DNA from: Macrostomum lignano
Lineage: Eukaryota
Assembly: GCA_002269645.1 (NCBI GenBank)
Contig: NIVC01003233.1
Span: 1-27,217, forward strand
Reading direction: 5' to 3'
DNA: 27,217 nt
In this document: in pieces, positions 2,250-27,217 of the stretch
How positions within the stretch are numbered: position 1 is the first letter of the stretch
Layout of the letters: each line of letters starts with the position of its first letter
Program-made: the position numbers and the translations under genes
Notes under the pieces: generated by a model
Told to the model about the DNA's origin: nothing
Seen by the model: only the letters and a program-made list of their open reading frames with translations
The model's database searches: none

Positions 2250-5200
2250 GTATAATGACTTAAATGCCAACATTTCTACCCGCATCTTTTACACTGTTGA
2301 CCTCTGACTCACATAAGCTGAATTTAGTTTGAAAATTCCCATTATATGTACGCGTTGTTGCCAATGAAGTTTCTTTAAAATTGTCCAAAATTGAATTATC
2401 TACCCTAAAAAATCGCCCAAAAATCAACCAGAAATTGCCTTAAAAATTAGTCATAAACTTCCTTAAATATCGGCCATAAACTGCCTTGAATATTGGCCAT
2501 AAACTGCCCTAAATATCGGCCATAAACTGCCCTAAATATCGGCCATAAACTGCCCTAAATATCGGCCATAAACTGCCCTAAATATCGGCCATAAACTGCC
2601 CTAAATATCGGCCATAAACTGCCCTAAATATCGGCCATAAACTGCCTTAAATATCGGCCATAAACCGCCCTAAATATCGACCATAAATTGCCTTAAAAAT
2701 CAAGCATAAACTGCCATAAACTGCTTTGAATATTGGCCTTAACTGCCTTAAATATTGGCCATAAACTGCCTTGAATATTGGCCATAAACTGCCTTAAATA
2801 TTGGCCATAAACTGCCTTAAATATTGGCCATAAACTGCCTTAAATATTGGCCATAAACTGCCTTGAATATTGGCCATAAACTGCCTTAAATATTGGCCAT
2901 AAACTGCCTTTAATATTGGCCATAAACTGCCTTAAATATTGGCCATAAACTGCCTTAAATATTGGCCATAAACTGCCTTAAATATCAGCCATAAATTGCC
3001 TCAAATATCAGCCATAAACTGCCTTAAATATCAGCCATAAACCACCTTAAATATCGGCCATAAACCGCCTTAAAAATTGCTTTAAAATGCCAAACTGCAT
3101 TAAGCATCTTTCACAAACCGCCCTAAAATCCCCCATAAACTGTCCCGACAATTGCTCAAATTCATAGAACTATTGAATAATAAATGCCTGCTCAGATCGG
3201 TGGAGTCAGCAGACCCGTCTACGGCAGCCGCGGCCGCTGCCGCCGCCTCCAGCAGTCAGAAGCGAGTGAAATGCGGCGGCTGCACCACCGGAGCCGAAGC
3301 CGTTGCCAAGTGCACCGAGTGCGCCGATTTCCTGTGCGGCTCCTGCCGCGCCGCCCACTCGGTGATGAAAATGTTTAGCAAGCATCACGTTGAAGAGATT
3401 ACGCCGGAAGATTTAGAAACTGACACGCCGTTGCAGTTGCAGAAGCCAATCTTTTGCTTCGATCATCCGCAGGTAAAGTATTGCAATTTTACTACTTAAA
3501 GTAGGCTTTATTATGAGTGTGCTTATTATTTCTATTTTATTCCTTTCATTTTTTCCAGGAGCAGCTGAAGTACTATTGTCAAGACTGCGGCACCCTGCAC
3601 TGTCCCGAGTGCGTCGCCATGGATCACAAGCAGCACGTTGTTGACAAAGTTGCTGATGCATTTCCTCAAGTGAGATGAAACACAATGTACACTCGCGCCA
3701 ACCCATAGTCCGCCCCAGCCCCCAATGTACACTCATGTAAACCAGAACACTGCCTGAATATACTCACGAAAACATAAACCCTGCCCGAAGGTACACTCGC
3801 TCTAACCCACAGCCTGCCCCAATGTACACTCGCTCTAACCCACAGCCTGCCCCAATGTACACTCAGGCTAACCCACAGCCTGCCCCAATGTACACTCAGG
3901 TTAACCCACAGCCTGTCCCAATGTATACTCACGCTAACCCATACTGTCTGCCCCATTGTTAAACTCACTAACTCAGAGACTGCCCCAATGTACACTCCCG
4001 CTATCCTAAACCCTGCCCCAATGTACACTCGCGCTATCCTAAACCATGCCCCAATGTACACTCCCGCTATCCTAAACCCTGCTCTAATGTACACTCGCAC
4101 TCTATCCATCTCACTCTCCCATCAAGGTGGACGCGGACCTGTCAGTCGGCCTCACTCAACTAAGCAATTCTCGCGACCGTTGGGAAACCGAGCTGGCCTC
4201 TCTCCAAGAGAAGCTGGAAGAGATTCGGGACAGCCGCGAGCAGAACGCCGGCGCAATTGCCGAAGCCGTCGCCTCTTATCGGGCCTTTGTTGAAGAGATT
4301 GGCGAGACTGCCGCTAAAGAGAATCGCCGTCTGCATGATGATTTAGAAATGAAGGTAAGGCTTTTCTTATTTTAAATTCGGCAAAAAATATTGTCATTAA
4401 AAACGCTAAATCGTCAGGAAAAATAGCCGATTTAATCCTCCTTTAGTCGTCTAGAAAATCTCTGAGTCAATGGGGAGTCTTCCTTAGTCATGAGGCAATC
4501 TCCTAAAGTTATGGGGAAATCTTTCTGACTCATGAAATTGTGAAATCTCCCTTAGTCATTGTGAAATCTCCCTAAGTCATTGTGAAATCTCCCTAAGTCA
4601 ATGGGAAATCTCCCTAAGTCATTTGAAATCTTTCTTGAGTCATTGGAAGTCTTTCTGAGTCAATGGGAAATCTCCCTAAGTCAATAGGAAATCTCTCCAA
4701 GTCATTGGGAAATCTTTCTAAGTCATTGGGAAATTTCCCTAAGTCATTGTGAAATCTCCCTAAGTCATTGTGAAATCTCCCTAAGTCATTGAGAAATCTT
4801 TCTAAGTCATTGTGAAATCTCCCTAAGTCATTGTGAAATCTCCCTAAGTCAATGTGAAATCTCCCTAAGTCATTGTGAAATCTCCCTGAGTCAATGTGAA
4901 ATCTCCCTAAGTCAATAGGAAATCTCTCCAAGTCATTGGGAAATCTTTCTAAGTCATTGGGAAATCTCCCTAAGCCATTATGAAATCTCCGTTAGCCATT
5001 GAGAAATCTCCCTTGAAGCCATCAGGAAATTTCCTTAAATCATTCAAAATCTTTAAGTCATGAGGAAATTCCCCTAAGTCATGGGGAATTCTCCCCAAGT
5101 CTCTAAGTCCCTAAATATTCCCAAGCCAAGTTTATTAGAACACTGGAATTACTGGAACAATCGATTAATTCGCACTCTAAACACGCGCCGCCGCCAGGTG

Positions 5201-8152
5201 ATGGAGCTGCTAGAGGCCACCAGCCGCGGGGTGGACCAAATGTCCGAAGCCGAGCAATTCGTCCGCCAATACCGCGAGCGCGCCGGTGCCGGCACCCTGG
5301 CCTACGCTAGGAAACTCCTAGTGGACTGGATGGCCACCCTGACTAGGAATCACTGGGACACCGGCCTGCTCACTAGCATCCCGTTTCAGGCTAATCATCC
5401 CCGGGTTCGAGCCCTGCTCGAAGCCAATTTCGGCACATTCGGCAACAGTTCAGAATCTGGTTCGCTCGGTTCCGCCGCCGCAGCCGGCTCTGTGGATCAG
5501 TTCGATCCTCAACTGATGCTGCAGCATCACGCTCAGCATCAGAACGCCGAACTGATGAAGCCGCACATGTTGGCTAGCAACGCACCGGCTACGGTTGTAC
5601 CGCCGCAGGTGCTCTACGGATTGCCGCAATCGGCGGCTGCAGCTGTCGCCGCTGCCGATACCACCGCGGCGGTTGTTTCGTCGGCCTCGGTAGCTTCATC
5701 AATTGCCGGCGTTGTCGATGGAGTCGGCGGTGCCAACAGTCTGATCAGCAGCATGCTGGCCGCTAAACTCAGTCTGGATGTCGGCGGTGTCGGCGTCGGA
5801 AGCGGTGTCGGAGGTGGCGGTGGCGGCGCTGTCGGTCCCGTGTCGCCAATAATCGGTACAACGCCCAGAGCGATGACGCCGAACTCCATGGACTTCATGG
5901 GCGGCGGCGGTGGCGGCGGCCGATCCATTGGCAGCGGCGGCAGTGGCGGCGGCGGAGGTGGCGGCGGTGGAATGCCATTCCCGAATCGGAACGGCCGCTG
6001 CGGGAACATGACTGTCCGGTTTCGCTGGGGCTCGCTAGGCTCGTCGCGCGGTCAGTTTAATTCGCCGCATGGTTTCTGCCTCGGCTCTGACGAGGATATT
6101 GTTGTGGCTGACACTCAGAACCACCGGATTCAGGTGTTCGACAAGACCGGCGAGCACAAGTTCCAGTTCGGCGTGGCCGGCCGCGACGAGGGGCAGCTGT
6201 GGTATCCGAGAAAGGTGAGGGATTTGATCTGGGAGGCTGGTAGCTTTATTTTTAGGGATCTAGGAGGCTGGTAGCTTAATCTGGGAGGCTGGTAGCTTAA
6301 TCTGGGAGGCTGGTAGCTTAATCTGAGGATATGGGAGGCTGGTAGCTTAATCTGGGAGGCTGGTAGCTTAATCTGGGAGGCTGGTAGCTTAATCTGGGAG
6401 GTTGGTAGCTTAATCTGGGAGGCTGGTAGCTTAATCTGGGAGGCTGGTAGCTTAATCTGGGAGGCTGGCAGCTTAATCTGGGAGGCTGGCAGCTTAATCT
6501 GGGAGGCTGGTAGCTTAATCTGGGAGGCTGGTAGCTTAATCTGGGAGGCTGGTAGCTTAATATGGGAGGCTGGTAGCTTAATCTGGGAGGCTGGTAGCTT
6601 AATCTGGGAGGCTGGCAGCTTAATCTGGGAGGCTGGTAGCTTAATCTGGGAGGCTGGTAGCTTAATCTGGGAGGCTGGTAGCTTAATCTGGGAGGCTGGC
6701 AGCTTAATCTGGGGATCTGGGAGGCTGGTAGCTTTAATTTAGGGATCTGGGAGGCAGGTAGCTTAATCTGAGGATCTGGGAGGCTGGTAGCTTAATCTGA
6801 GGATCTGGAAGGCTGCTAGCTTAATCTGAGGATCTGGGAGGCTGGTAGCTTAATCTGAGGATCTGGGAGGCCGGTAGCTTTAATTTAGGGATCTGGGAGG
6901 CTGGTAGCTTTAATTTGGAGACCTGGGAGGCCGGTAGCTTTAATTTGGGGACCTGGGAGGCCGGTAGCTTTAATTTGGGGACCTGGGAGGCTGGTAGCTT
7001 TAATTTGGGACCTGGGATGCCGGTAGTTTTCTAAGAATTGAGAGTTACAGTTACAGAAATTCGCATAAAGAACCCAAAAATCTGAATAAATACATCCATT
7101 CGACTGTACACTCGCTCCCGTTGCCAGGTAGTTGTCATGCGCCAAACCGGCAAGTACATAATCTGCGACCGAGGCAGCGAACGCAGTCGCATGCAAATCT
7201 TCACTAAATCGGGCCACTTCCTGCGCAAAATCACCGTGCGCTACATAGACATAGTTGCCGGGCTGGCCATCAATAGCCAGAATCATATTGTGGCCGTGGA
7301 CTCCGTGTCTCCAACCGTATTCGCCATCGCCGAGAATGGCGATCTAGTGAAGTGGTTCGACTGCTCTAGCTATATGCGCGAGCCGTCTGACATCGCTATC
7401 CAGGGTCGGGAGTATTTCATCTGCGATTTCAAGGGCCACTGCGTGTCAGTGTTTCAGGTAGGACTTCTATGCACTTTAATAAAGTCATTGTCACAGTTGA
7501 CAGATGTGGACTAGGGGGGGGGGGGGGAGGTCGCCACACACCCTCAATTTACTCATTTTACAGTTTCTAGATTTGTTCAAGGCCCTTTTTACAAACAAAG
7601 ACAACAAACGATTTGTACTCACAGGTGGTCACCCATCCAAGTACTAACCAAACCCATCATTGCTTAACTTCGGTGATCAGACGAAAACCGGTGTTTTCAA
7701 CGTGGTATTACCGTTACCTGTAGTGCACTTAGCTTATCTCAAACAGTGTGTTCATCTACGTACCTAACCGCGACCAAATTTGCTTAACTTCTAGATTTTA
7801 TGACAATAGCACAATATCTGAGATTTAGTATAGTGCGACTAGCCGCCGCCCCCCTCCCAATCCACAGGAGGACGGCGTGTTCCTTCGCCGCATCGGCTCC
7901 GAATCTGTCACTAATTTTCCTAACGGCATCGACATTAGCGACCTTGGCGATGTTTTAGTTGGCGACTCGCATGGTAACAAATTCCACGTGGCCGTGTTTA
8001 ATCGGCTCGGCCAGCTGACTTCCGAGTTCGAGTGTCCGGCCGTGAAAGTGTCCCGATGCTGCGGACTGAAAATCACTAGCGAAGGCTACGTTGTCACCCT
8101 AGCTAAGAACAATCATCACGTGCTGGTGCTGGATACGCTCTACATTAATTAG
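1618..8152 (+). CDS. mei-P26: TRIM-NHL protein (RING, 2 B-boxes, coiled coil, low-complexity linker, NHL beta-propeller), Mei-P26/NHL-2 type; 7 coding exons, about 959 aa
   Basis: Exons 1618-2249, 3196-3472, 3559-3669, 4127-4354, 5198-6214, 7128-7457 and 7868-8152 join in frame through GT..AG introns (phases 2,0,0,0,0,0), total 2880 nt. NHL motifs [68 protein letters not shown] and [30 protein letters not shown] match my recollection of Drosophila Mei-P26 rather than Brat. An N-terminal RING is present, which Brat lacks. The start codon is uncertain (1618, 1639 or 1693). Confidence 0.92.
2451..3072. repeat. 23-bp minisatellite (GGCCATAAACTGCCCTAAATATC), about 26 copies, intron 1
   Basis: Period read directly from the sequence. 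Confidence 0.95.
3196..3472 (+). CDS. mei-P26: mei-P26-like exon 2: B-box 1 and start of B-box 2
   Basis: Acceptor CTCAG|A at 3195; CGGC...[17 protein letters not shown]; donor CAG|GTAAAG at 3473. Confidence 0.9.
3559..3669 (+). CDS. mei-P26: mei-P26-like exon 3: B-box 2 (not in the ORF track)
   Basis: Acceptor TTTTCCAG; translates [37 protein letters not shown]; donor GTGAGA at 3670. Confidence 0.9.
3683..4099. repeat. 33-bp minisatellite (GCCCCAATGTACACTCGCTCTAACCCACAGCCT), about 12-13 diverging copies, intron 3
   Basis: Period read directly; explains the repetitive spurious ORFs 3666-4109 and 3988-4293. Confidence 0.92.
4127..4354 (+). CDS. mei-P26: mei-P26-like exon 4: coiled coil
   Basis: Acceptor CATCAAG|GTG; heptad-like [12 protein letters not shown]; donor AAG|GTAAGG at 4355. 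Confidence 0.85.
4484..5101. repeat. 21-bp minisatellite (GTCATTGTGAAATCTCCCTAA), degenerate at the edges, intron 4
   Basis: Period read directly; 7-aa periodic spurious ORF 4614-4931. Confidence 0.93.
5198..6214 (+). CDS. mei-P26: mei-P26-like exon 5: end of coiled coil, Q/A/G-rich linker, NHL repeat 1 and start of repeat 2
   Basis: Acceptor CCGCCAG|GTG gives LEMK-VMELL continuity; donor AAG|GTGAGG at 6215. Confidence 0.88.
6227..7031. repeat. 21-bp minisatellite (TCTGGGAGGCTGGTAGCTTAA) grading into roughly 30-bp variants, intron 5
   Basis: Period read directly. Confidence 0.95.
7128..7457 (+). CDS. mei-P26: mei-P26-like exon 6: NHL repeats
   Basis: Acceptor GTTGCCAG|GTA gives LWYPRK-VVVMR; donor CAG|GTAGGA at 7458. 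Confidence 0.92.
7597..7718 (-). rRNA. Solitary diverged 5S rRNA copy (probable pseudogene or SINE3-like head), antisense in mei-P26 intron 6
   Basis: Minus strand reads GGTAACGGTAATACCACGTTGAAAACACCGGTTTTCGTCTGATCACCGAAGTTAAGCAATGATGGGTTTGGTTAGTACTTGGATGGGTGACCACCTGTGAGTAC..., matching invertebrate 5S over about 100 nt with recognisable A-box and C-box. The ends can still pair (GGTAAC with GTTGTC, with wobbles). Confidence 0.9.
7720..7845 (-). pseudogene. Second, heavily degenerate 5S-like copy in tandem
   Basis: Minus strand GAAGTTAAGCAAATTTGGTCGCGGTTAGGTAC (7760-7791) mirrors the GAAGTTAAGCA...GGTTAGTAC core of the first copy at a 120-nt offset; the flanks are only weakly similar. Confidence 0.55.
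7868..8152 (+). CDS. mei-P26: mei-P26-like exon 7: final NHL repeats and stop
   Basis: Acceptor TCCACAG|GAG gives VFQ-EDGVF; TAG at 8150-8152. Confidence 0.92.
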
Positions 8153-12603: not shown

Positions 12604-14502
12604 ATGTCATCTTCTGCTTTTAGAGCTGTTGCGACACTGCTGACTTGCGCTGGCTGCTGCTTGCCTTGGGTGATCGCGACTCAGACCGGCTACACTGACT
12701 TCAATTGTAAGTGGTGTTCTAATTATCCTTGCGTCTAAAATGATCACGTATCATCCGTTAGACATCTGATTCATCTGTTAGACATCTGATTCATCTGTTA
12801 GACATCTGATTCATCTGTTAGACATCTGATTCATCTGTTAGACATCTGAATCATCTGTTAGACATCTGATTTATCTGTTAGACATTTGAATCATCTGTTA
12901 GAAATCTTAATCATCTGTTAGACATCTGAATCATCTTTTACACACCTGAAATCACCTGTTTGACCTAGGATAGGAAAAATTTCCTATATTAAAAGGCCCA
13001 GGCCTAAAAGGCAGACAATATCGATGGGAAATTTTCAGTTTACGTCCGTGACCCTCCCATCCCGACGGCATCCGCTGAGTATACCTTCTCGGACGGTCGC
13101 ACCGTCGCTGAGTGCCTGATGCGATGCAAATTCAGCGCCTCTGTCAACTGCTACGCCACCGCCTTTCGGCAGGATCTCAACCGCTGCGTCTTCTCGGCAA
13201 CTTGGTGCGCCAGATTTGACATCACTGCACCGTCGAGTTTCGTGTACAGGAAACGTCTGAGCAAGCCCGATTTTAGTGAGTTCTTATTGGACGATGCTTT
13301 GGTGGATTTGCCAAAAGCAAATCAGTCAGTGGACCGTGTCAGTGGACCGTGTCAGTGGTCTAGCGCGGCGCTCTGATATGTCTGTGGCCCAGGCTTGATA
13401 GTGCATTTAACTACCTTGAGAACCAACCCCCAAGGCACAGTGAAGTGTACATGCCTAACTATAAATAAAGTTAGGGCCGCTGTACACTCCTGTGTGTGTG
13501 TGTGCCTGTGGGTATGTCTAAGTACGTATCTGCGCGCTTGTGTGGCTGCTCAGGGGAGTCGACGGAATGGGCAGTAATGCCTCTCGCCGGTTGTGTGACA
13601 ATGTCGCTCAAAGTGCGCCAGGCTGCACACAGGCCCTGCCTGTAAATTAGATGCTCGATTAGACTTAAGCTCAGTCGGTGAAGTGTTCGATTAAGATGAC
13701 CAGGTCCAGTTCGCAACAGAGAACATCAATAGCTACAGTATTAAATGCAGTGCATTTGTGTATAACTATAACTTATTAATCACTTCACGCAATCCATGCC
13801 GCAGATGTGTACGCCAGCGTTGGCAGTCGCAAGTTTCAAGTTATCCAACAACGATCTAAAGGCTTTTTGAGCTTTGCTCAGTGCTGGGCCGACTACGAAA
13901 ACGGATTCGGCGATGACAAAGACTTTTGGATTGGTAATGAGTCTATAAAAATGTTTTTTAATAGCTGATTTAGTCTAGTGACTAGTGAGCCTGTGCCTTG
14001 GGGGGCTGGCCCTCTTGGCTGTGAATCGCACGAAAAACCCTCGAAGGCTTAAATAAACCGATCAGCCAATTTTTGTATTTCAAGGATTGCGCAAAATCAA
14101 CGAACTGACTGGAAACACGCCGCGACGCCTCCGCATCGAGGCTGTAACTCGCGAGAACAAGCTTTACGTTGCCGAGTACTCCGACTTCTCAGTTGGCGAC
14201 GCGTCAACAAATTACTTGATGACATTCAATTCGTATTTGTCTGGAAGCTCCAACACCAGCGGAGATTCGCTCAGCATCAATAAGGGAATGAAATTCTCTA
14301 CTCTGGATAGGGACAACGATGACAATTCGGACAGTTGCTCCGAGAGTCCTACGGCTATGCCGGCTGGTGGTTCGAGCAGTGCTCCGACAGCAACCCTAAC
14401 GGGATCTACTCGGCTGAGTTTAACAGCAATTCGGCCATGCACTATTGGGACGCCGACAAGAAAAAGGCGTTGAAAAGCATTCGACTCATGGTGGAGATTT
14501 GA
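12604..14502 (+). CDS. Secreted PAN/apple-like + fibrinogen C-terminal (FReD) protein; 4 exons; one frameshift near 14345-14349
   Basis: Exon 12604-12706: signal-peptide-like MSSSAFRAVATLLTCAGCCLPWVIA. Exon 13039-13275: ECLMRC..NCYA..RCVF, PAN/apple-like cysteine spacing. Exon 13805-13933: VIQQRSKG..FAQCWADYENGFGDDKDFWIG. Exon 14085-14502: LRKINELT..LRIE..GMKFSTLDRDND, then after a frame change YGYAGWWFEQCSDSNPNGIY..LKSIRLMVEI*. All three introns are GT..AG and phase 1. Confidence 0.85.
12751..12955. repeat. 20-bp minisatellite (TTAGACATCTGATTCATCTG), about 10 copies, in FReD intron 1
   Basis: Period read directly. Confidence 0.93.
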
Positions 14503-18370: not shown

Positions 18371-19654
18371 CTGAACTTAGTTTTCATTTGAAAGCAAAGA
18401 ATAAAAGTCGCTCTTAGAATAGTCTATGGCAAAAACTCAAGCCCTACTTATCAAAGCTTCACAACAAGAGTAGGCTGGTGTGATTTCAATTCTTGCACCG
18501 ATTTTTTAAAACAAAATGCTCGAATCGGCATTCTGTGTACAATTCCGACAACTGTGCTTTCAAAAGCGACAATTTTCAAACAAAGCAAACAAGCTACCAC
18601 GAGAAACCGACACTTTGCAATCAATTCTGACAGTTGGCTATGAATTAGCTTTTTCTGTCCTCCTATCTATATGGCTCTTACTGCGAAATTTCCAATCAAT
18701 TCCCACAAATTTCAATCTATTTAGACAAGCTACTTTTTACTTTGGGTGGGGCCAGGGCTAAATGTGCATGTGCAGGGCTAAATCTATGGGTGTTCCGAAT
18801 CTCCAAGTTTCTCTCCATGATGTGGCTATGGCATTCGCAGTACGAGCAGTATTGTTGAATCTCGGCTCAAACTGTGCCCCAGCCAGCCCCCAAAGGGTGT
18901 TAACACACTCCTCTGAGCAACACTTGAATGCACATCCGGGACTTTTAGCGCAGCAAAAGGAGGGAACAAAAAGCATTGCTACACAATAGAAGCGGTCTTT
19001 CGCGTCCCTGGGATTTCCCTAGGGAATTCCGGAATTACTGAAGCTAAGAGCTGAAGCCCAGTTGGAAATATTCTGATGCTTTAAAAGCTATATTAAAATA
19101 TGCTTCTCCAATTTTTCCATAGATATCTCTTTGTCACAGCAGTCTAACAAAAAAGTTTGAGTACGTATTAAATCAAAAGTACTTTCGCTACTTTCCGCTA
19201 GCTTATCGAATTACTGTAAGTCTATTGTCGAGGTCCTGCTATATGTTAGTTCATAACTTGCGTTTCCATTGTCAGTTTTTAATGATGTTAAAGATAATAT
19301 GAAGAAGAGAGTTGCCGCTATAAATCTATGCAAAATGATATGTTATTAATACATGATAATATATGACATATGATAATGTTATTTGGATCAGCAGAACGAG
19401 AGATATAAAGAAAAGTAACACTACTACTTTTGGGACAGCCCTCGTATTATCAGCATCAGTGGGTGATTCGGTTGGAACAATTCTGTCTAACAGGTGACAG
19501 CTACTGTCTAATAAGAAGTTTTACCAGTGCAAATTAATCAACTGCAGAAATCAGTCGCTGAAGTTTTTTGTTCGCACGAAGTGAAAATTTATAATTGTTA
19601 AAGAAATTTTGCATCAGACACGCTCAATCGAGATGAGAATGAAGCTGTTTTACA

Positions 19655-19802
19655 TAATTAAATAATTAAATAATTAAGTAATTAAATAATTAAATAATTA
19701 AGTAATTAAATAATTAATTAAATAATTAAATAATTAAATAATTAAGTAATTAAATAATTAAGTAATTAAATAATTAAATAATTAAGTAATTAAATAATTA
19801 AA
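19655..19802. repeat. 8-bp AT-rich tandem repeat (TAATTAAA/TAATTAAG)n
   Basis: Seen directly. Confidence 0.95.
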
Positions 19803-20354
19803 CATTTAAGTTTTAAAATAAGTGTTAGATTTTCAGACCGAATTTAAAACGAATAATGTGAGCACATCAGAGCTAAATCTTATAATCAGATTTATATTAG
19901 CAGACAATTACAAGTTGCATTATCAAGGACTACTAGACTAGAAGGACGCAACACTTGCAAATCGTGCAAAAATAGTTGAAGGCCGATTATTAAAATGTCT
20001 GTATTTCCGAATCAATTGCATGTAGAACGTGTCACGTTATTTGATGTTGTCCGTGACCCTTAAAAGGGCCGTTTTAGTCCCAAATGAATCGAGTCAAGTC
20101 TTGATAGCGGATTTGTGTAGCGGAGCACTTGGCACACAAGGCCGGAAGCTGGCCGTAGTTGGTTATTATTGTTGAGATCAATATTCGATGCGGTTAATAT
20201 CAATATAGAACTTATTGCGCGTTGGGGCACTGGCGGCTGCAACAATGGTTTTGAATTGAAGGTGAGTTAGAGATTGTAGTCGAGTGGTAGGCGAGTGATG
20301 CAAGACGATGCAACGTGGTGAGTAACGGCGATGAGTACAACAGACGGCGATGAG

Positions 20355-20366
20355 TACAACAGTGGC
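20355..20366 (+). repeat. Target-site duplication, left copy
   Basis: TACAACAGTGGC, identical to 26205-26216. Confidence 0.92.
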
Positions 20367-20389
20367 TTGACTTACTTACTTGACTTAGC
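20367..20389 (-). repeat. Simple-repeat 3' tail of the retrotransposon
   Basis: Minus strand CTAAGTCAAGTAAGTAAGTCAA directly abuts the TSD. Confidence 0.8.
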
Positions 20390-20480
20390 TGCAGGGCGGT
20401 CCGAAGACGCAGCGGGGAGGCGAGCGTCGCCCATTCCGCTAATCCCTGAAAGACCCGCATAGGCTAGGGCGCGGGGCCGG

Positions 20481-23400
20481 TCAGGGAGGTCTGCCGGTCC
20501 TGTCTGCAGCGTTGTCTTCGGTGGGGAAGACGGAGGCTCGCTTGGTGGCCCGGAGGAACCGGATGAGCCGTGGGATGTTCTCGGGCCGGCAAACGTCGTC
20601 CAGGGACGGGTTGGGCCCGAGGTGGTTGAGCCGGTCTCGGTTGAAGGCCGGGCAGTAGCAGACGAAGTGCATGGCATCTTCATTCTCGAGGCTGCAGAAG
20701 GGGCAGAGTTCACTCCGGCGAACACATCGGAGGAAGCAGTGCCTGGCAAAGCAACCGTGACCTGTGAAGGTCATAGTGAGAGCGCGGATATCTTTTCGAT
20801 TTTGATTCAAAAGGATTCTCCGCAGCTTGAGGGACGGATTGGGCACTGCCGCACGAGATTGGCGGCAGTTGGAGATACCATCCCATCTGCGCAAGTGCAG
20901 GATGTCCGCCCAGTCGTTAATCTGACGATTAATGACTGTGGCGGGGATGGGGGCCAGGGGCACGGGGCCAAGGGGCGAGCCGGAACAGCCCGCCTTAGCG
21001 AGGGAGTCGGCGAGCTCGTTACCTTTGAAGCCGGCGTGTCCTGGGATCCACGTGAGCCGGACGGTGTTCCTCCGAGCCAGCTTGTTGAGCTGCCCGATAC
21101 AGTCGCGGACTGTTCGGGAGTTCGTAGTGGTGTGACACAGGGCCTGTAAAGCGGCCTGGCTGTCAGAGTGGAAGAAGATTCTTTTGTCCTTGAAGTCCTT
21201 GCGGTGGAGCTCAGCTGCACAGGAGCTGATGGCAAGGACTTCATTCTGGAAGACGCTGGAGAGTCTGCCAGTGTGTTGGGCGTGAGTAGCAATCACGCGG
21301 CCGTTGATAAGGATGCAGACTCCAAAGCCGGATAAACCGTCTTTGGAGGATCCGTCAGTGAAGCAGTGAACCTCCTGAGGGGCCCAGCTGTCGTTGGCGT
21401 TCTCCCTGGAGGGGATCGTGACCTTGAAGCGTTGGTAGAGGTTGAGGGAGCGCGGTTCAGCGTCCGAAAGGACAGCCGCACTCCCACTCTCCTCCAGAAC
21501 TTTAAGGCACAGGTCAGAGTGCGGCAGGAGCTTGCGCTTCGCCATCGCTCTTTGTGGCTTGAAGCTAACACCAGCCTCGATGAGCCGGCGGGTGGTTTTA
21601 GCAGCCTCGCGACGGACAAAGATGTCCAGAGGCGGGAGGCAGAGAAAGGCGTTGAGGCCGTCAAAGGGAGCAGAGAGCGGGGCATTCAGGATCATGCGGC
21701 ACGCACGTCCCTGCACCTTTTTGAGGGCTTCGTGGCAGGTTTTAATCTGCAAGGCGCTGGTCCAGACCAGGCCGGCGTATGTAACGGCCGGTCGGACCAT
21801 TGCGGTATAGATCCACCAGAGACGCTTTGGGGTGAGGCCCCAGGTGGTGCCGACGGCTCTGCGCAGCTGCGCAAGAATCGCGAGGGCTTTTTTGGTTTTG
21901 GCCTGGACGTGGGTGGACCAGCTCAGCCGGTGGTCCAGCGTAACGCCGAGACACTTGGTTTGCTTGCAGGATGGAATTTCCACTCCGTAAAGCTTTAGTG
22001 GGCGAATACGCCAGTTTACCCTGCTGGTGAACATGATCGCGACAGTTTTGGTCTCGGAGAGCCTGAGGCCGCACCTGTCCGCCCAACGTTCAGCAGAGCG
22101 AATGAAGTTTTGCAAAAGATCTCTAAGGGTTTCAGGTGACGGTCCGGATGCCACGGCTGTGACATCATCGGCGTAACCGACCTTGAGGATGGGGTCAAGA
22201 TGGCTGTCCTGGAGGAGCTCATCGATGACCATGTTCCAGAGAACTGGAGAGAGGACACCGCCCTGGGGGCTGCCTTTGCAGACGGTTACCGTCCGTTGGT
22301 GGCCCAACAGGTGTGCGGTGGCAGTACGGTGGCTGATCATATACATGATCCACCGGGTGAGGTGCGAGTGGGTTCCTCTAGCACGTAGAGCTCTGTCAAA
22401 GGCCTCAAAGAGGACATTATCGAAGGCTCCAACAATGTCGAGGAAGACAGCGAGAGCGTAGCCATTACCAAGAACGGCTTTCTCCAGCATGTCAACCAGA
22501 ACGTGAAGCGCGCTCTCCGTGGACCTGCCTGCCCGAAAGGCATGCTGGTTCTCACTGAGCGGCTTGTTCTTCAGTTCCACAGAGAGGAGGCGCCAGAGCA
22601 CCAGTCTCTCTAACAGCTTCACCAATGAGGAGGTGAGGCTAATTGGTCTGAAGGATTTAATGGACCGGTAGTCCGGTCGGCCAGGCTTGGGGATAAAGAC
22701 CACCTTGGCCTCGGTCCAGGATTTCGGAACAAAGCCGAGCACAATGCAGGCTTTCAGAAGCCGGCAAAGGTTCCGCAGGAAACCGGTGCATTTCACCGCC
22801 TCCCGCAGGAAGGCTGGCACAACGCCGTCCGGTCCTGGGGATTTGAAGGGTTTGAAGGAGGAGACAGCTTTAGTAACGCGGTCCTCCGTGATGATTGAGT
22901 CAGCCAGTACGTGTCCGCCCACTGAGTGGTCAGGGGGGCCGGGCCTAGCTGGCTCGTTCGGGAAAAACGCTGTTAGCATCGCTTCCAGTGTTTCTCCTGG
23001 GTTCTCAGTGAGCGAGCCGTCGGCTCTCTTGACTGAGGAGAGTTTGGACATTTTGTCCAGGGTGAGGGCTTTAACGATTCTGGAGGTGGGGCGGGAGCCC
23101 TCAAGTTCCTCACAGTATTCGCGCCACTTGTTGGTTTTGGCGTTCCTAACCTGCCTCTTGAACTCGTGGATAGAGTTCAGGTAGGCGGTTTGGTCGGCCG
23201 GGTTTTTAGTTTTTTGGGCCCTGCGGTGAAGCCTTTTGGCTCTGCGACGGAGGTCGCCAAGCTGCGGGTTCCACCATGGGGCCGACTGTTTGCCTTTATA
23301 TGCCTTTAGTGGGCATGAGGCTTCGAAGGCAGCAGTGAGCGAGTCCGTAAGTGCGGCCGCAAATTCATCTGCTTCTTCGCAGGTGTTGATGGAGACTGGA

Positions 23401-24184
23401 GCGCTAGTGCAACGATAGGTCTCCTCCAGGGCAAGCCTGAAGGCGGTCCAGTCGGTATTCCTAGCATTCCGTTTCCAGTAAAGCTGGCCTGCGTTACGGG
23501 CGCTGGCCAGCGTGAAAGAGATGAACTTGTGATCGGAGAGGGACGCCTCAGGAAGCACCCGCCATTCCCTAGTGCTCTGGAAGAGCCTGGGCGTGGCGAG
23601 GGTGGCATCCAGCACCTCCGATCGGCGTCCGTTATTGAAGGTAGGGGTACTACCCGAGTTACAGAACTCAAGGGTTGTAGTAGCAATATAAGCCAGGAAG
23701 TCTTCACCTCTCTGGTTTATATCAGAACTGCCCCAGTGGGTGTGGTGGGCATTGATGTCACCTGCCACGAGCAGCTCATAGTTTCTGGTGGAGCAGAGCT
23801 CGACCAGTGTGACAAGCTCTACTGGGATCATCTCGCCGTCGCCCGGTAGGTAAACCGAGGCGATGAGGGTAGTCCTCCCAGGGAGTATGTCTTCAGACTG
23901 GATGACACAGATGTCCCTGGTGGACAGGTCTGATCTGAGCCATGCGTTAATAGAACTGGACACCATGATGCAGGATCTTGGTGCCAGGTTTCCCTCCCGG
24001 GTACCAGCGGTTAAACACTGGTAGCCGGTGGGGACATGTTGGGGCTGCCCCTAAGCGTCCAAGGTTCCTGGATAAGGATAATCCCTGGCACGTATTGGTC
24101 AGTGTGCTTCAAGAGGTTGACTGAAGCAGCAATGCTGTGCTGCAGGTTGACCTGCAAGCAGTGGATGCCCTGGGAGACAGTCAT
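20481..24184 (-). CDS. Retrotransposon ORF2: AP endonuclease, reverse transcriptase, RNase H, CCHC zinc knuckle; frameshift near 24035-24053
   Basis: ATG at 24184 gives MTVSQGIHCLQVNLQHS..ILIQEPW (endonuclease start). This shifts into the 1161-aa ORF containing GDINAHH, SDHK, FRPISL, QGGVLSP, YADD (22164-22175), TDGS..SDSQAAL..WIPGHAGFKGNELADSLAK and CPFC..EDAMHFVCYC. Confidence 0.93.
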
Positions 24185-24186
24185 GT

Positions 24187-25715
24187 CTACTGTCCAGGGG
24201 AGGAGAAAAGCAACTCATTCTCAGCCTCATCGGTGAGAGTTGAGTCGCCAATTTCCATTGGCTCAGGCTCAGCCGCCTCCCCAGCCGCCGCGGAGGCGGA
24301 CACGGCGCCCACGGCAGGTGAGTCACCTAGCCGCGCTACACCGCCCTCCTCCCCAGCGACTGGGGTACGGCTGCTGCCTTCGCCTTGCGCCCCGCCGTCG
24401 GGAGTCTGAGCTCGGCCGGCAGCGTCCTCCTGGTGGTAATCCCACCAGTTGGAAGGCTGAGCCGTGCCGTCGTCCAGTTCCCTCGGCTGGCTTTCAGTGT
24501 TTTTTCGAGCGGCACGAGTCTGCTCGAGGTGAAGTCTCAGAGACTGAGCTTCGTCAAGTGCGCGCTGGATTAGACCGGACCGCCGGCTACTGCGGGCGGG
24601 TCTACGTCCGCGCGAGGCGGACTCAGCAGCGCGAATAGCCTTGTTAGGCTCGGGATCGGGTTGCTGCTGCCGCTTGGCCGGCGGGGCATGAGCCCCAGCT
24701 CCGGGAGCGGCGCGCTTCCCGTCTTTCTTGGTCTCCACCTTGCCCTCCTCACAGCGGAGGATGGTCAGTTGATGGAGACCAAGGTGGAGGTTTGTGCCGT
24801 GCGGTAGCCGCTTGGCCCATCCCTCCGTCAGGCCGAGGATGACTGTGGCCCCGGTCGTGCCCTTGCGGACCGTGCTGTGGTACACAAGACCACTGGCGTC
24901 GAGATCCGGGTGCCGCTTGAGCAGGAGCTGCCGCAGCTGCTCCCGGACTTGATTGCACTGTCGGCCGGGACCCAAATCCGATGGCGGATGGTCTTCGGCC
25001 GCTCGCTCTCCAAGGCGAAGGTCAGCTGGCCCAGGTCGCTGTGCCAGTCGAACTTGGGCAGCTGATCCCGCAGGAGCTGGGTGCTCTCCTCGGATTTGCA
25101 CCACAGTAGGATGCACCCGTTCGCCTTGGTGGACTTGACGATGTCCACGAAGACGCCCTCCAGGGTTAGATTGAGCAAGCCCTCGTCGATGGTACGCCAC
25201 GCGACGTCGAGCTGCTCGGGCGTCAGGTCGAAATCCCCGCCGAGGATCATCACGGCGGGTTGCAGCGGCTGCTTGACCTTGGACGCGTAGGACTCGGAGG
25301 TCTTGAGCGGGGCCGCTTTGTCTTTGGAAGGCGGTAGGCCGGCAGGGTTGCCCCCCTGAGAGCCCGAGGACACGGCGGTTCCTGACGGCCCAGCCGCGCC
25401 ACCGGACTCCCCAGAGGGCCTCCCCGCTGCGGTGGCTCCCGAAGGCCTCACCGCGGCTTGCGTGCCCTCCTCAGACGCAGCAGCAGCCCGCTTCTCCTGC
25501 CGCTTACGGTTGCGGCGGATGTTCCGCTGTCGTCGAGACTCGGCCGTGCGCGGTCGGCTAGACTGGCGGCCAGGGTGATCGGCGGCAGCGTCAGCTGGCC
25601 CGGTTGGACCAGGTTGGGCGTTGGTGCTACCAGTGGTAGCTACCGGAGCGGCTGATCCCGGTGAGCCAGAGGCGACCGGGTCAGTTTCTTTAGGGATGGT
25701 GGCGTTAGTGGCCAT
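24187..25715 (-). CDS. Retrotransposon ORF1 (DUF4780-like central domain); frameshift near 24942-24944
   Basis: ATG at 25715 (MATNAT). The segment LLWCKSEESTQLLRDQLPKFDW..ERPKTIRHRIWVP resembles DUF4780 of LOA-type ORF1s. After KSG it continues in another frame as EQLRQLLL to a TAG at 24187-24189, 2 nt before the ORF2 ATG. Confidence 0.8.
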
Positions 25716-25919
25716 AGCTGAAAAGCGGGGAGGGCTACTCGTTATGCGAGTTGAGTACCCGACTGGCCGACACCTCAAGCCAGCCGGTTTGAAAAAAGGA
25801 CCGCTAGCGACCGGACTACTCCCCGGCCTTCCAGCCCATCGGCACGGTCAAACACCTTAGGCATTAGAGGGTACGTTAAGCAGTACCACGGCCTGCAGGC
25901 TGGTGAGCCAGACCCGCAT

Positions 25920-26204
25920 ACCCAAATTCGGCCGAAGCCACTGGATAGGGTCGCCAGCGCCGGAGCCCAGTCTGTCCAGCAGCCCTAGGGTCTGCCTTGA
26001 ACACACGCGGGGACGAGTACCCCTGGGTCGACTTGCGAGACAGCGTGGGGGAGTCTGCGGCTGCCAGAGGCAAATAGAGGGTGCAGACCTCCCACCAGCC
26101 TTGACCTGCTGAAGATGGGGGCAGGCGTGAAGCATCGCAGACCTTAGCTCGTAGGCCTAGTCTGTCTCATACTTCACTGGCATGCTGAATACGCCTTCGC
26201 GTGC
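25920..26204 (-). ncRNA. HDV-like (double-pseudoknot) self-cleaving ribozyme at the retrotransposon 5' end
   Basis: P1 GCACGCG (26204-26198) with CGCGUGU (26009-26003); P2 ACCCAG (26028-26023) with UUGGGU (25925-25920); P3 GGG/CCC around loop UACUCGU; P1.1 AC/GU; J4/2 CGAA with candidate catalytic C at 25930. G1 is the first base inside the TSD. Confidence 0.85.
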
Positions 26205-26216
26205 TACAACAGTGGC
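26205..26216 (+). repeat. Target-site duplication, right copy
   Basis: TACAACAGTGGC, identical to 20355-20366. Confidence 0.92.
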
Positions 26217-26316
26217 AGATGCGTAGTGGTGAGATTGGCGTTAGCCGTGGCAGACAGTGGCAGGCTGGCCCAGACAGAGAGAAGGAAAACAAGGCCGCGA
26301 AGGGACGGCAGAACGA

Positions 26317-26375
26317 AAGGAAGAAAGACAAAAGGAAGAAAGACAGAAAGGAAGGAAGGAAGGAGAGGAGGGTGA
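26317..26375. repeat. GA-rich low-complexity tract
   Basis: GAAAGGAAGAAAGAC/GAAG repeats. Confidence 0.8.
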
Positions 26376-27217
26376 AAAACCAGCCGCAGAGGGGGGGGCG
26401 CGAAGCACGAGCGGTTTTCATTGGCTGGCGAGAGAACTTAAAATTATCGATCGTGCCAATTTTATACGGTCGCGAGAGAGGATAGCAAAATATACAGTGA
26501 ATTAGAAATTGCCACAAAATCGTTGGGCCCTACTATAAGTAAACGTTAAAATAAACTATGGAGAAATTAATATGAGAAATTACAAGGGAAAATATAGTCC
26601 AGCGGCCCTTTTCGGGACCACCTTAAACTGACAACGTCACAAACGTTAATTTTTTCGACAGATTGTTCCATTGTTCCTACCAAGTAAGCCTACCAAGATG
26701 AAGATGCGAAAATCCTGTACAATGGAGTCACCCTATTTTTGGCGTATGTAGCTATTCAAATCTTCAAGTTTAGGAAGCAAATTAATAAAGTAGAGCCGAA
26801 AATCTTGAGCGCATTTTTGTGAATACGCTCTTAGTTTCATTAGTGACGTTTCTGAAAATATATCGGAATCTGGAGATCATATACAGAACCCGCATAATTT
26901 GGTCTATATCCTTTAAATCTCTCACAAGATGGCCAGTCAGAAAAAATGAGAGAGAAGAAAAAGCCAAACATCACAAAAGCAGACTCCTGTTTTAACATTC
27001 TGTTCTTAGAATTCTCAGAATTCTCAGACAGATAAACAACTGTCTGTCTGGCAACAAAATTGGAGGTATGATAAACTGTATTGAGCAAATTTTATTGTCT
27101 GTCGAACAGTGTTGCAAAGTGACGAAACGGTAGAGAACAAAGAAAATGGAAAAAGTAAATAACAAATTCATGCAAATGAACTCAAATTATTTGCAATGCA
27201 CAAAAATTCTTTTAACA

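Follow-up and report, generated by a model that had tools for sequence, protein, structure and literature searches.

The window analyzed in this study, a stretch of 27,217 nucleotides of the Macrostomum lignano genome (contig NIVC01003233.1 of assembly GCA_002269645.1), contains a GC-rich non-LTR retrotransposon (LINE) inserted on the minus strand between two copies of a target site duplication (TSD). The TSD, GCCACTGTTGTA, is an exact 12-bp direct repeat with exactly two occurrences. An initial annotation of this DNA had used it to place the element's 5' end, and on reexamination the repeat proved to be real. With its copies at 26205-26216 and 20355-20366, G26204 is the first base of the element. 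The boundaries and coding regions are as follows.

20367-26204, minus strand: LINE insertion between the TSD copies, 5838 bp
26205-26216, minus strand: 5' TSD copy GCCACTGTTGTA, exact repeat
20355-20366, minus strand: 3' TSD copy GCCACTGTTGTA, directly after the (AAGT/AAGTC)-type 3' tail of the element
24757-25391, minus strand: part of ORF1 that resembles ORF1 of the relative L001; frame broken near 24948-24969
20484-24160, minus strand: ORF2 (APE, RT, RNase H), assigned by Pfam and by comparison with L001; frame broken near 24041-24050

The Pfam domains of ORF2 are found in the order Exo_endo_phos_2, RVT_1 and RNase_H (APE-RT-RNase H), and a M. lignano protein in UniRef is 100% identical to part of the window ORF2. 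The name LOA-like, given in the initial annotation, has this domain order as its sole basis and should be taken as provisional; the named database matches to ORF2 bear no TE clade names. The APE-RT-RNase H order is common to I, Tad1 and Ingi among other clades, and is not LOA-specific. Baggins, a Drosophila element considered below, is a member of the LOA clade.

The element was compared with a close relative, L001, a 6492-nt Logan contig in which both ORFs are intact: ORF1 has 525 aa, and ORF2 has 1232 aa with 61% identity to the window ORF2. With the L001 ORFs as reference, the frame change in the window ORF2 falls inside the APE domain. The frame changes in ORF1 and ORF2 may indicate a decayed copy or may be assembly indel errors; because of them, the earlier description of this sequence as an active family member is unsupported as far as the window copy is concerned. 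When ORF1 of L001 was used as a protein query, the only matches were itself and one M. lignano UniRef entry. Pfam detected DUF4780 in the ORF1 of more distant relatives and did not detect it in the ORF1 of the window element or of L001. The L001 contig starts exactly at the base aligned with 26204, yet it extends about 530 nt beyond the 3' tail of the element.

A 19-bp tandem duplication overlaps the 3' TSD copy, and the insertion site lies at the edge of this duplication (20325-20362). The element is flanked by a TTAAATAA microsatellite and a (GAAAGGAA)n tract (19650-19802, 26315-26362). Elsewhere in the window the following features were identified.

7599-7718, minus strand: 5S rRNA gene (RF00001, 89 bits, full length)
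1618-2307 and 5081-6274, plus strand: ORFs that contain a RING finger and an NHL repeat; they are probably exons belonging to a host gene of the TRIM-NHL type
14087-14473, plus strand: ORF in which Pfam detects a fibrinogen C-terminal globular domain (E 4.6e-13); probable host exon

HDV-like arrangement at the element's 5' end

The HDV-like strand order P1, J1/2, P2, P3, L3, P3', P1', P1.1', P4, J4/2, P2' is complete in the window element and in L001. The initial annotation had described an HDV-like ribozyme at this place on the minus strand. All the segments that it listed were located in the sequence at the positions it gave, and a descriptor script recovered the same parse. The 3' half of the putative window ribozyme has two alternative solutions, a compact one and that of the initial annotation, and both are included in the following list.

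26198-26204, minus strand: P1 5' strand GCACGCG, paired with 26009-26003; predicted scissile bond A26205/G26204
26028-26197, minus strand: J1/2 peripheral domain, 170 nt, containing a conserved hairpin at 26177-26128
26023-26027, minus strand: P2 5' strand CCCAG (ACCCAG, 26028-26023, in the initial annotation)
26010-26022, minus strand: P3 GGG (26022-26020), L3 UACUCGU (26019-26013) and P3' CCC (26012-26010), from the sequence and L001
26003-26009, minus strand: P1 3' strand CGCGUGU, from pairing and the L001 comparison
26001-26002, minus strand: P1.1 3' strand GU, paired with L3 (A26018-U26001, C26017-G26002)
25996-26000, minus strand: J1.1/4 UCAAG with a CAA motif (GCAAU in L001, GCAAC in L128, CAAC in the RF02682 consensus)
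25979-25995, minus strand: compact P4 hairpin GCAGACC-CUAG-GGCUGC; fold with flanks, -9.4 kcal/mol
25971-25978, minus strand: compact J4/2 UGGACAGA, with C25974 as candidate catalytic cytosine in C-A-G-A before P2'
25966-25970, minus strand: compact P2' CUGGG; the homologous CUGAG of L001 pairs with CUCAG
25920-25931, minus strand: J4/2 (C)CGAAU (25931-25926) and P2' UUGGGU (25925-25920) of the initial annotation, present in the window sequence

P1 is a 7-bp helix with G26204-U26003 as its first pair. Its first base is the first base of the element as defined by the TSD, an agreement already noted in the initial annotation, and it is also the first base of the L001 contig, as expected if cleavage takes place there. 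P3 consists of 3 bp, and the 7-nt L3 supplies two P1.1 bases and keeps the metal-site U...G pair, in the window as well as in L001. The equivalent parts of L001, in contig coordinates, are listed below.

1-6 / 189-194: P1 / P1', GCCUGC / GCAGGC
170-175 / 232-237: P2 / P2', CUCAGA / UCUGAG
176-178 / 186-188: P3 / P3', GGG / CCC
179-185: L3, UCUCCGU
180-181 / 195-196: P1.1, CU / AG
197-201: J1.1/4, GCAAU
202-225: P4, 10-bp hairpin

The descriptor script allowed up to 250 nt in J1/2 and up to 120 nt in P4, and its strict form specified a C-N-R-A J4/2. The loose form was unselective, as it matched at 69 distinct start sites on both strands of the window (54 kb), of which eight had a J4/2 of the C-N-R-A form. 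When the 5' UTR was shuffled with its dinucleotides preserved, a match anchored at +1 arose in 10 of 3000 cases with the loose form and in none of 3000 with the strict form. The match at +1 is the sole strict match across the whole 5.8-kb element, and its coincidence with the base fixed by the TSD is not explained by chance.

Searches with the Rfam covariance models, a check of the kind proposed in the initial annotation, were negative. A scan of the whole window at the gathering score detected only a 5S rRNA and no HDV-type match, and a scan of 25700-26400 at E<=10 again found no HDV-type match and returned only two lncRNA noise matches. None of the HDV-type families (HDV_ribozyme, CPEB3, drz-Agam, HDV-F-prausnitzii) matched L001 at E<=1. 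The lack of Rfam matches for the window and for L001 can be attributed to the long J1/2 insertion, 170 nt in the window, and it was nonetheless counted as a negative result. P1 was absent from the plain MFE folds of the window and of L001, and the z-score of the window was only -0.32. This failure is expected of a pseudoknot split by a 170-nt insert, for which such folding is uninformative, and it too was counted as negative.

The covariation comes from one comparison, that of the window with L001, and thus from only two close sequences. Position 3 of P1 is A-U in the window and C-G in L001, and position 4 changes from C-G to U-A. Both pairs of P1.1 change on both sides, from A-U to C-G and from C-G to U-A. 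In P2, a C-G pair of the window becomes U-A in L001, and the P2' strands are homologous. P3 is identical in the two sequences, and L3 retains U1, C5, G6 and U7 (UACUCGU vs UCUCCGU), four positions on which the RF02682 consensus agrees. In structural register, 34 of the 36 core cells are paired and eight pairs are compensatory, two in P1, two in P1.1 and between one and four in P2 depending on the register. Slid controls, in which the partners were shifted by 1-3 nt, had 7-18 of 36 cells paired and 0-1 compensatory pairs. The P4 hairpin is located in the same place in both elements, with unrelated sequences. The proposal of an HDV-like nested double pseudoknot starting at the first base of the element is supported by a relative with the same architecture and with compensatory changes in P1 and P1.1. 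The initial annotation had also called for an alignment of other copies, and the relative that was aligned begins at the base homologous to 26204. What the sequences show directly is the layout, the agreement of its start with the end set by the TSD, and, in one relative, the retention of this layout through compensatory changes.

L001 departs from the window in several details. Its P1 has 6 bp and a G-C first pair, as opposed to 7 bp and G-U in the window. Its J4/2 (AGCUGC) is non-canonical, with a C located four bases before P2' in the context C-U-G-C instead of C-N-R-A, and its P4 could extend, absorbing the J4/2. In addition, a local 4-bp hairpin between bases 3-6 and 11-14 of the element (26202-26199 with 26194-26191) carries in L001 the two compensatory changes seen in P1. 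The covariation of P1 is thus not exclusive to the long-range helix, and the local hairpin may represent a competing or a post-cleavage 5'-terminal structure. A second descriptor match in L001, from nt 227, was rejected as a ribozyme, as it lacks a J4/2 and Rfam support.

Two versions of the 3' half

The two versions of the 3' half predict one and the same cleavage site. They differ in the candidate catalytic cytosine of the window, which is C25974, four bases before P2', in the compact version, and C25930 or C25931 in that of the initial annotation. The latter keeps the same ribozyme and the same cut, with a P4 of about 70 nt, the J4/2 (C)CGAAU and the P2' UUGGGU at 25925-25920. This arrangement has a 6-bp P2 preceded by C-G-A-A-U, a combination that occurred in only 0.64% of the shuffles, and the 70-nt intervening stretch holds an 11-bp helix. 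Moreover, the block GGC-CGAAU aligns with GGCUAAAC in L001, and it is similar to the J4/2 of L128 (GGCUAAAU) and L002 (GGCUAAAC), both compact relatives, and to the RF02682 consensus GGCUAA. However, the bases that follow GGCUAAAC in L001 (CGGGUACC) are unable to pair with the P2 5' strand CUCAGA, and the base homologous to C25930 is a U, so that the assignment of C25930 and of P2' to 25925-25920 has no counterpart in that element. The P2' segment GGGUAUG (25923-25917) also has another partner, CGUACCC (25875-25869), and the equivalent in L001 is GGGUACC/GGUACCU. Finally, the 70-nt P4 fails to close beside P1.1' and J4/2, and about 10 unpaired bases follow P1.1' in place of a P4 stacked on it. 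We therefore consider this version of the 3' half rather doubtful.

The initial annotation missed the shorter 3' half, with P4 at 25995-25979, C25974 and P2' at 25970-25966. Intact L001 can form the compact version only, and its 6-bp P2 was found by chance in 0.44% of shuffles. The compact P2' of the window, taken alone, was present in 61% of shuffles, and in 3.7% when accompanied by C-N-R-A. The variable G/A site of the compact P2' also covaries with C25930/U in a local hairpin. On the basis of these two sequences the compact 3' half is the one we favour, with a confidence that is about evenly balanced, and the 3' half and the catalytic cytosine were probably misassigned in the initial annotation.

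The region downstream of the ribozyme, 25855-25965 on the minus strand, is structured and conserved with L001. It contains the block GGCCGAAU (GGCUAAAC in L001) and the helix 25923-25917/25875-25869, and it overlaps the J4/2 and P2' of the initial annotation. The presence of GGCUAAAC in both L001 and L002 was considered as proof of homology and rejected, since an 8-mer match between two 500-nt sequences is expected by chance.

Related elements and the case for catalysis

More distant relatives, with 30-36% identity in ORF2, were inspected for ribozymes at their 5' ends, and three of them (L128, L002 and L130) have a ribozyme or a candidate. The ribozyme of L128 is compact and HDV-like, spans nt 44-114, some 630 nt upstream of ORF1, and matches RF02682 end to end. 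The match scores 28.1 bits, below the gathering score of 44, with an E value of 0.0042 when only the 5' UTR of this element was searched. The 43 nt upstream of the L128 ribozyme hold a direct repeat, GGTAGACAGC, at 1-10 and 34-43. In L002, a manual HDV-like candidate occupies 2-202, beginning at nt 2 of the contig, with a 7-bp P1 that includes a G-U pair, an 8-bp P2 and the J4/2 GGCUAAAC. The J1/2 of this candidate, 107 nt long, is closed by a 10-bp helix, its L3 of 29 nt is atypical, and the L002 5' UTR produced no ribozyme match in Rfam at E<=10. The third element, L130 (P0033, 35% ORF2 identity), has at 1-65 a twister-P1-like motif (RF03160, 32.4 bits, E 0.0035), whose 5' side is cut by the contig end and which is located about 390 nt upstream of an ORF1 with DUF4780. 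Descriptor matches in L003, L005, L006, L007 and L129 were at chance level only. The L004 contig is without a 5' end, and so is the P0002 contig (57% identity). Judging from these sequences, ribozyme processing of the 5' end seems to be common, not demonstrably universal, in this ORF2 lineage.

From the sequence evidence, we consider it probable that the element RNA begins with an HDV-like self-cleaving ribozyme of some 240 nt (minus strand, 26204 to about 25966). A different reading of the region is that of a conserved, structured 5' UTR that lacks catalytic activity or has lost it, in which an internal promoter sets +1 and the HDV-like parse is a relic or a product of chance. The missing Rfam matches, the permissive descriptor and the non-canonical J4/2 of L001 are compatible with it, as is the local 5' hairpin, which covaries as well as P1. 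The 5' end of L1Tc, moreover, combines a promoter and a ribozyme (PMC3383444). The distribution of conservation in the 5' UTR points in the same direction, with the best-conserved stretch, 41 nt that are 83% identical to L001 (the ORF2 amino acids are 61% identical), located in the J1/2 hairpin, outside the catalytic core. Against this reading, chance does not account for the anchored coincidence at +1, and the two pairs of P1.1 together with two pairs of P1 are doubly compensated while P3 and L3 remain constant. Related elements have ribozymes at their 5' ends, and a promoter and a ribozyme could coexist. A purely non-catalytic 5' UTR is thus quite unlikely in our view.

The J1/2 domain, of 170 nt in the window and 163 nt in L001, has features of its own. 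The long hairpin at 26177-26128 is predicted in both sequences, and the consensus fold includes compensatory pairs. In large HDV-like ribozymes, a structured peripheral J1/2 joins P1 and P2 and has been assigned a "pinch" role (PMC4908430). The J1/2 of the window is folded and has its own covariation, which fits the published role. It is also possible that the hairpin is a protein-binding site or a promoter element. A metagenome scan with a conserved 16-mer of J1/2 identified at least 120 loci, none of which was related according to BLAST against the 5' UTRs.

The occurrence of either an HDV-like or a twister ribozyme in related elements hints at an interchangeable processing module. A more far-reaching proposal is that the 5'-processing ribozyme has been exchanged between classes within one APE-RT-RNase H LINE lineage, with twister-P1 in L130 and an HDV-like ribozyme in L001, L002, L128 and the Macrostomum element. 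The Macrostomum branch would then have gained the 170-nt J1/2 and two mutually exclusive 3' halves, which would act as a switch between the cleaving fold and a post-cleavage fold of the 5' UTR related to translation or to binding of the element's own protein. We put this forward as a speculation that is more likely wrong than right by a wide measure.

Proposed processing pathway and comparison with known systems

If the 5' region is an HDV-like ribozyme, the processing of the element could take place as follows. The element would be transcribed within a longer precursor, a read-through transcript that starts in upstream host sequence. The ribozyme would fold during transcription into a nested double pseudoknot in which P1 stacks with P1.1 and P4, and P2 with P3, and in which the 170-nt J1/2 is placed between P1 and P2. 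The J4/2 cytosine, most likely C25974 in C-A-G-A, and Mg2+ would then catalyse a reaction in which the A26205 2'-OH attacks the bond to G26204. The 3' product would be an element RNA that begins with a 5'-OH G+1, includes the complete ribozyme and is free of host sequence. Since the whole ribozyme lies 3' of the cut, every full-length cDNA copy would inherit it and new insertions would begin at that G. Target-primed reverse transcription would consequently generate copies in which G+1 immediately follows the TSD, as in the window copy. We infer catalysis, the identity of the catalytic cytosine, co-transcription and any further role of the 5' UTR, and the functional unit would be the family rather than the frameshifted window copy. 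By analogy with L1Tc, an internal promoter may exist alongside the ribozyme.

If confirmed, a free-living flatworm used as a laboratory model would join the hosts of LINE lineages whose exact 5' ends depend on HDV-like ribozymes, and the defined first base of full-length copies would be explained without a conventional upstream promoter. For work on RNA folding, the element would also offer a natural ribozyme that has a large J1/2 and two 3' halves in competition. The principle has been established since 2010-2011, and the gain is therefore incremental.

That HDV-like ribozymes process non-LTR elements at their 5' ends is established (PMC3774820, PMC3185411, PMC6765202). A ribozyme of this type precisely at the 5' end has been published for R4, Dong, Baggins, RTE and L1Tc, as well as for R2 of many animals including planarians (PMC3774820, PMC6765202, PMC3185411). 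The initial annotation had suggested that the ribozyme was possibly unrecorded for this lineage. Our literature search found no paper linking Macrostomum to ribozymes, in agreement with the suggestion as far as this animal is concerned; the kind of ribozyme, by contrast, has been published in Baggins, R4, Dong, RTE, L1Tc and R2, planarian R2 included (PMC3774820, PMC6765202). The Macrostomum element is a new example of the published LINE 5'-end ribozymes and not a new mechanism.

The closest published cases are the ribozymes of Drosophila Baggins1, R4, Dong, RTE (drz-Agam-2) and L1Tc (Ruminski et al. 2011, cited in PMC4908430; PMC3774820; PMC6765202; PMC3185411). As in those elements, the putative Macrostomum ribozyme is located at the 5' terminus, its predicted cut is at the first base, the ribozyme would remain complete in the processed RNA, the order of the double pseudoknot is shared, and its function would be release from a co-transcript. 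It differs in that it belongs to a macrostomid flatworm, its 170-nt J1/2 is much larger than most, its P1.1 consists of A-U plus C-G, and it has two competing 3' halves.

Other known systems share different parts of this picture. The compact bacterial RF02682 (HDV-F-prausnitzii) resembles it in L3 (UCUaCGU vs UACUCGU/UCUCCGU), in the CAA of J1.1/4 and in a purine-rich J4/2 after a short P4, and it differs in a model J1/2 of about 10 nt, compared with 170 nt in the window, which does not match the model. In Schistosoma mansoni, flatworm LINEs are processed by a small self-cleaving ribozyme, in that case a twister variant (PMC8501958), to which the twister-P1-like motif of L130 can be compared; the window element is HDV-like and not twister. 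The R2 ribozymes, including that of planarians, and the large HDV-like ribozymes share with the Macrostomum element a long structured insertion between P1 and P2 (P1.2), closed by a helix through which P1 and P2 are brought close (PMC3774820, PMC4908430), and in R2, as proposed here, the 5' end is processed out of a read-through transcript (PMC3774820). R2, however, is site-specific, has a single ORF and a restriction-like endonuclease, and in most species is cleaved upstream, in the 28S rRNA, whereas the Macrostomum element has an APE endonuclease, two ORFs and an RNase H, resides outside the rDNA, and has its predicted cut exactly at the junction.
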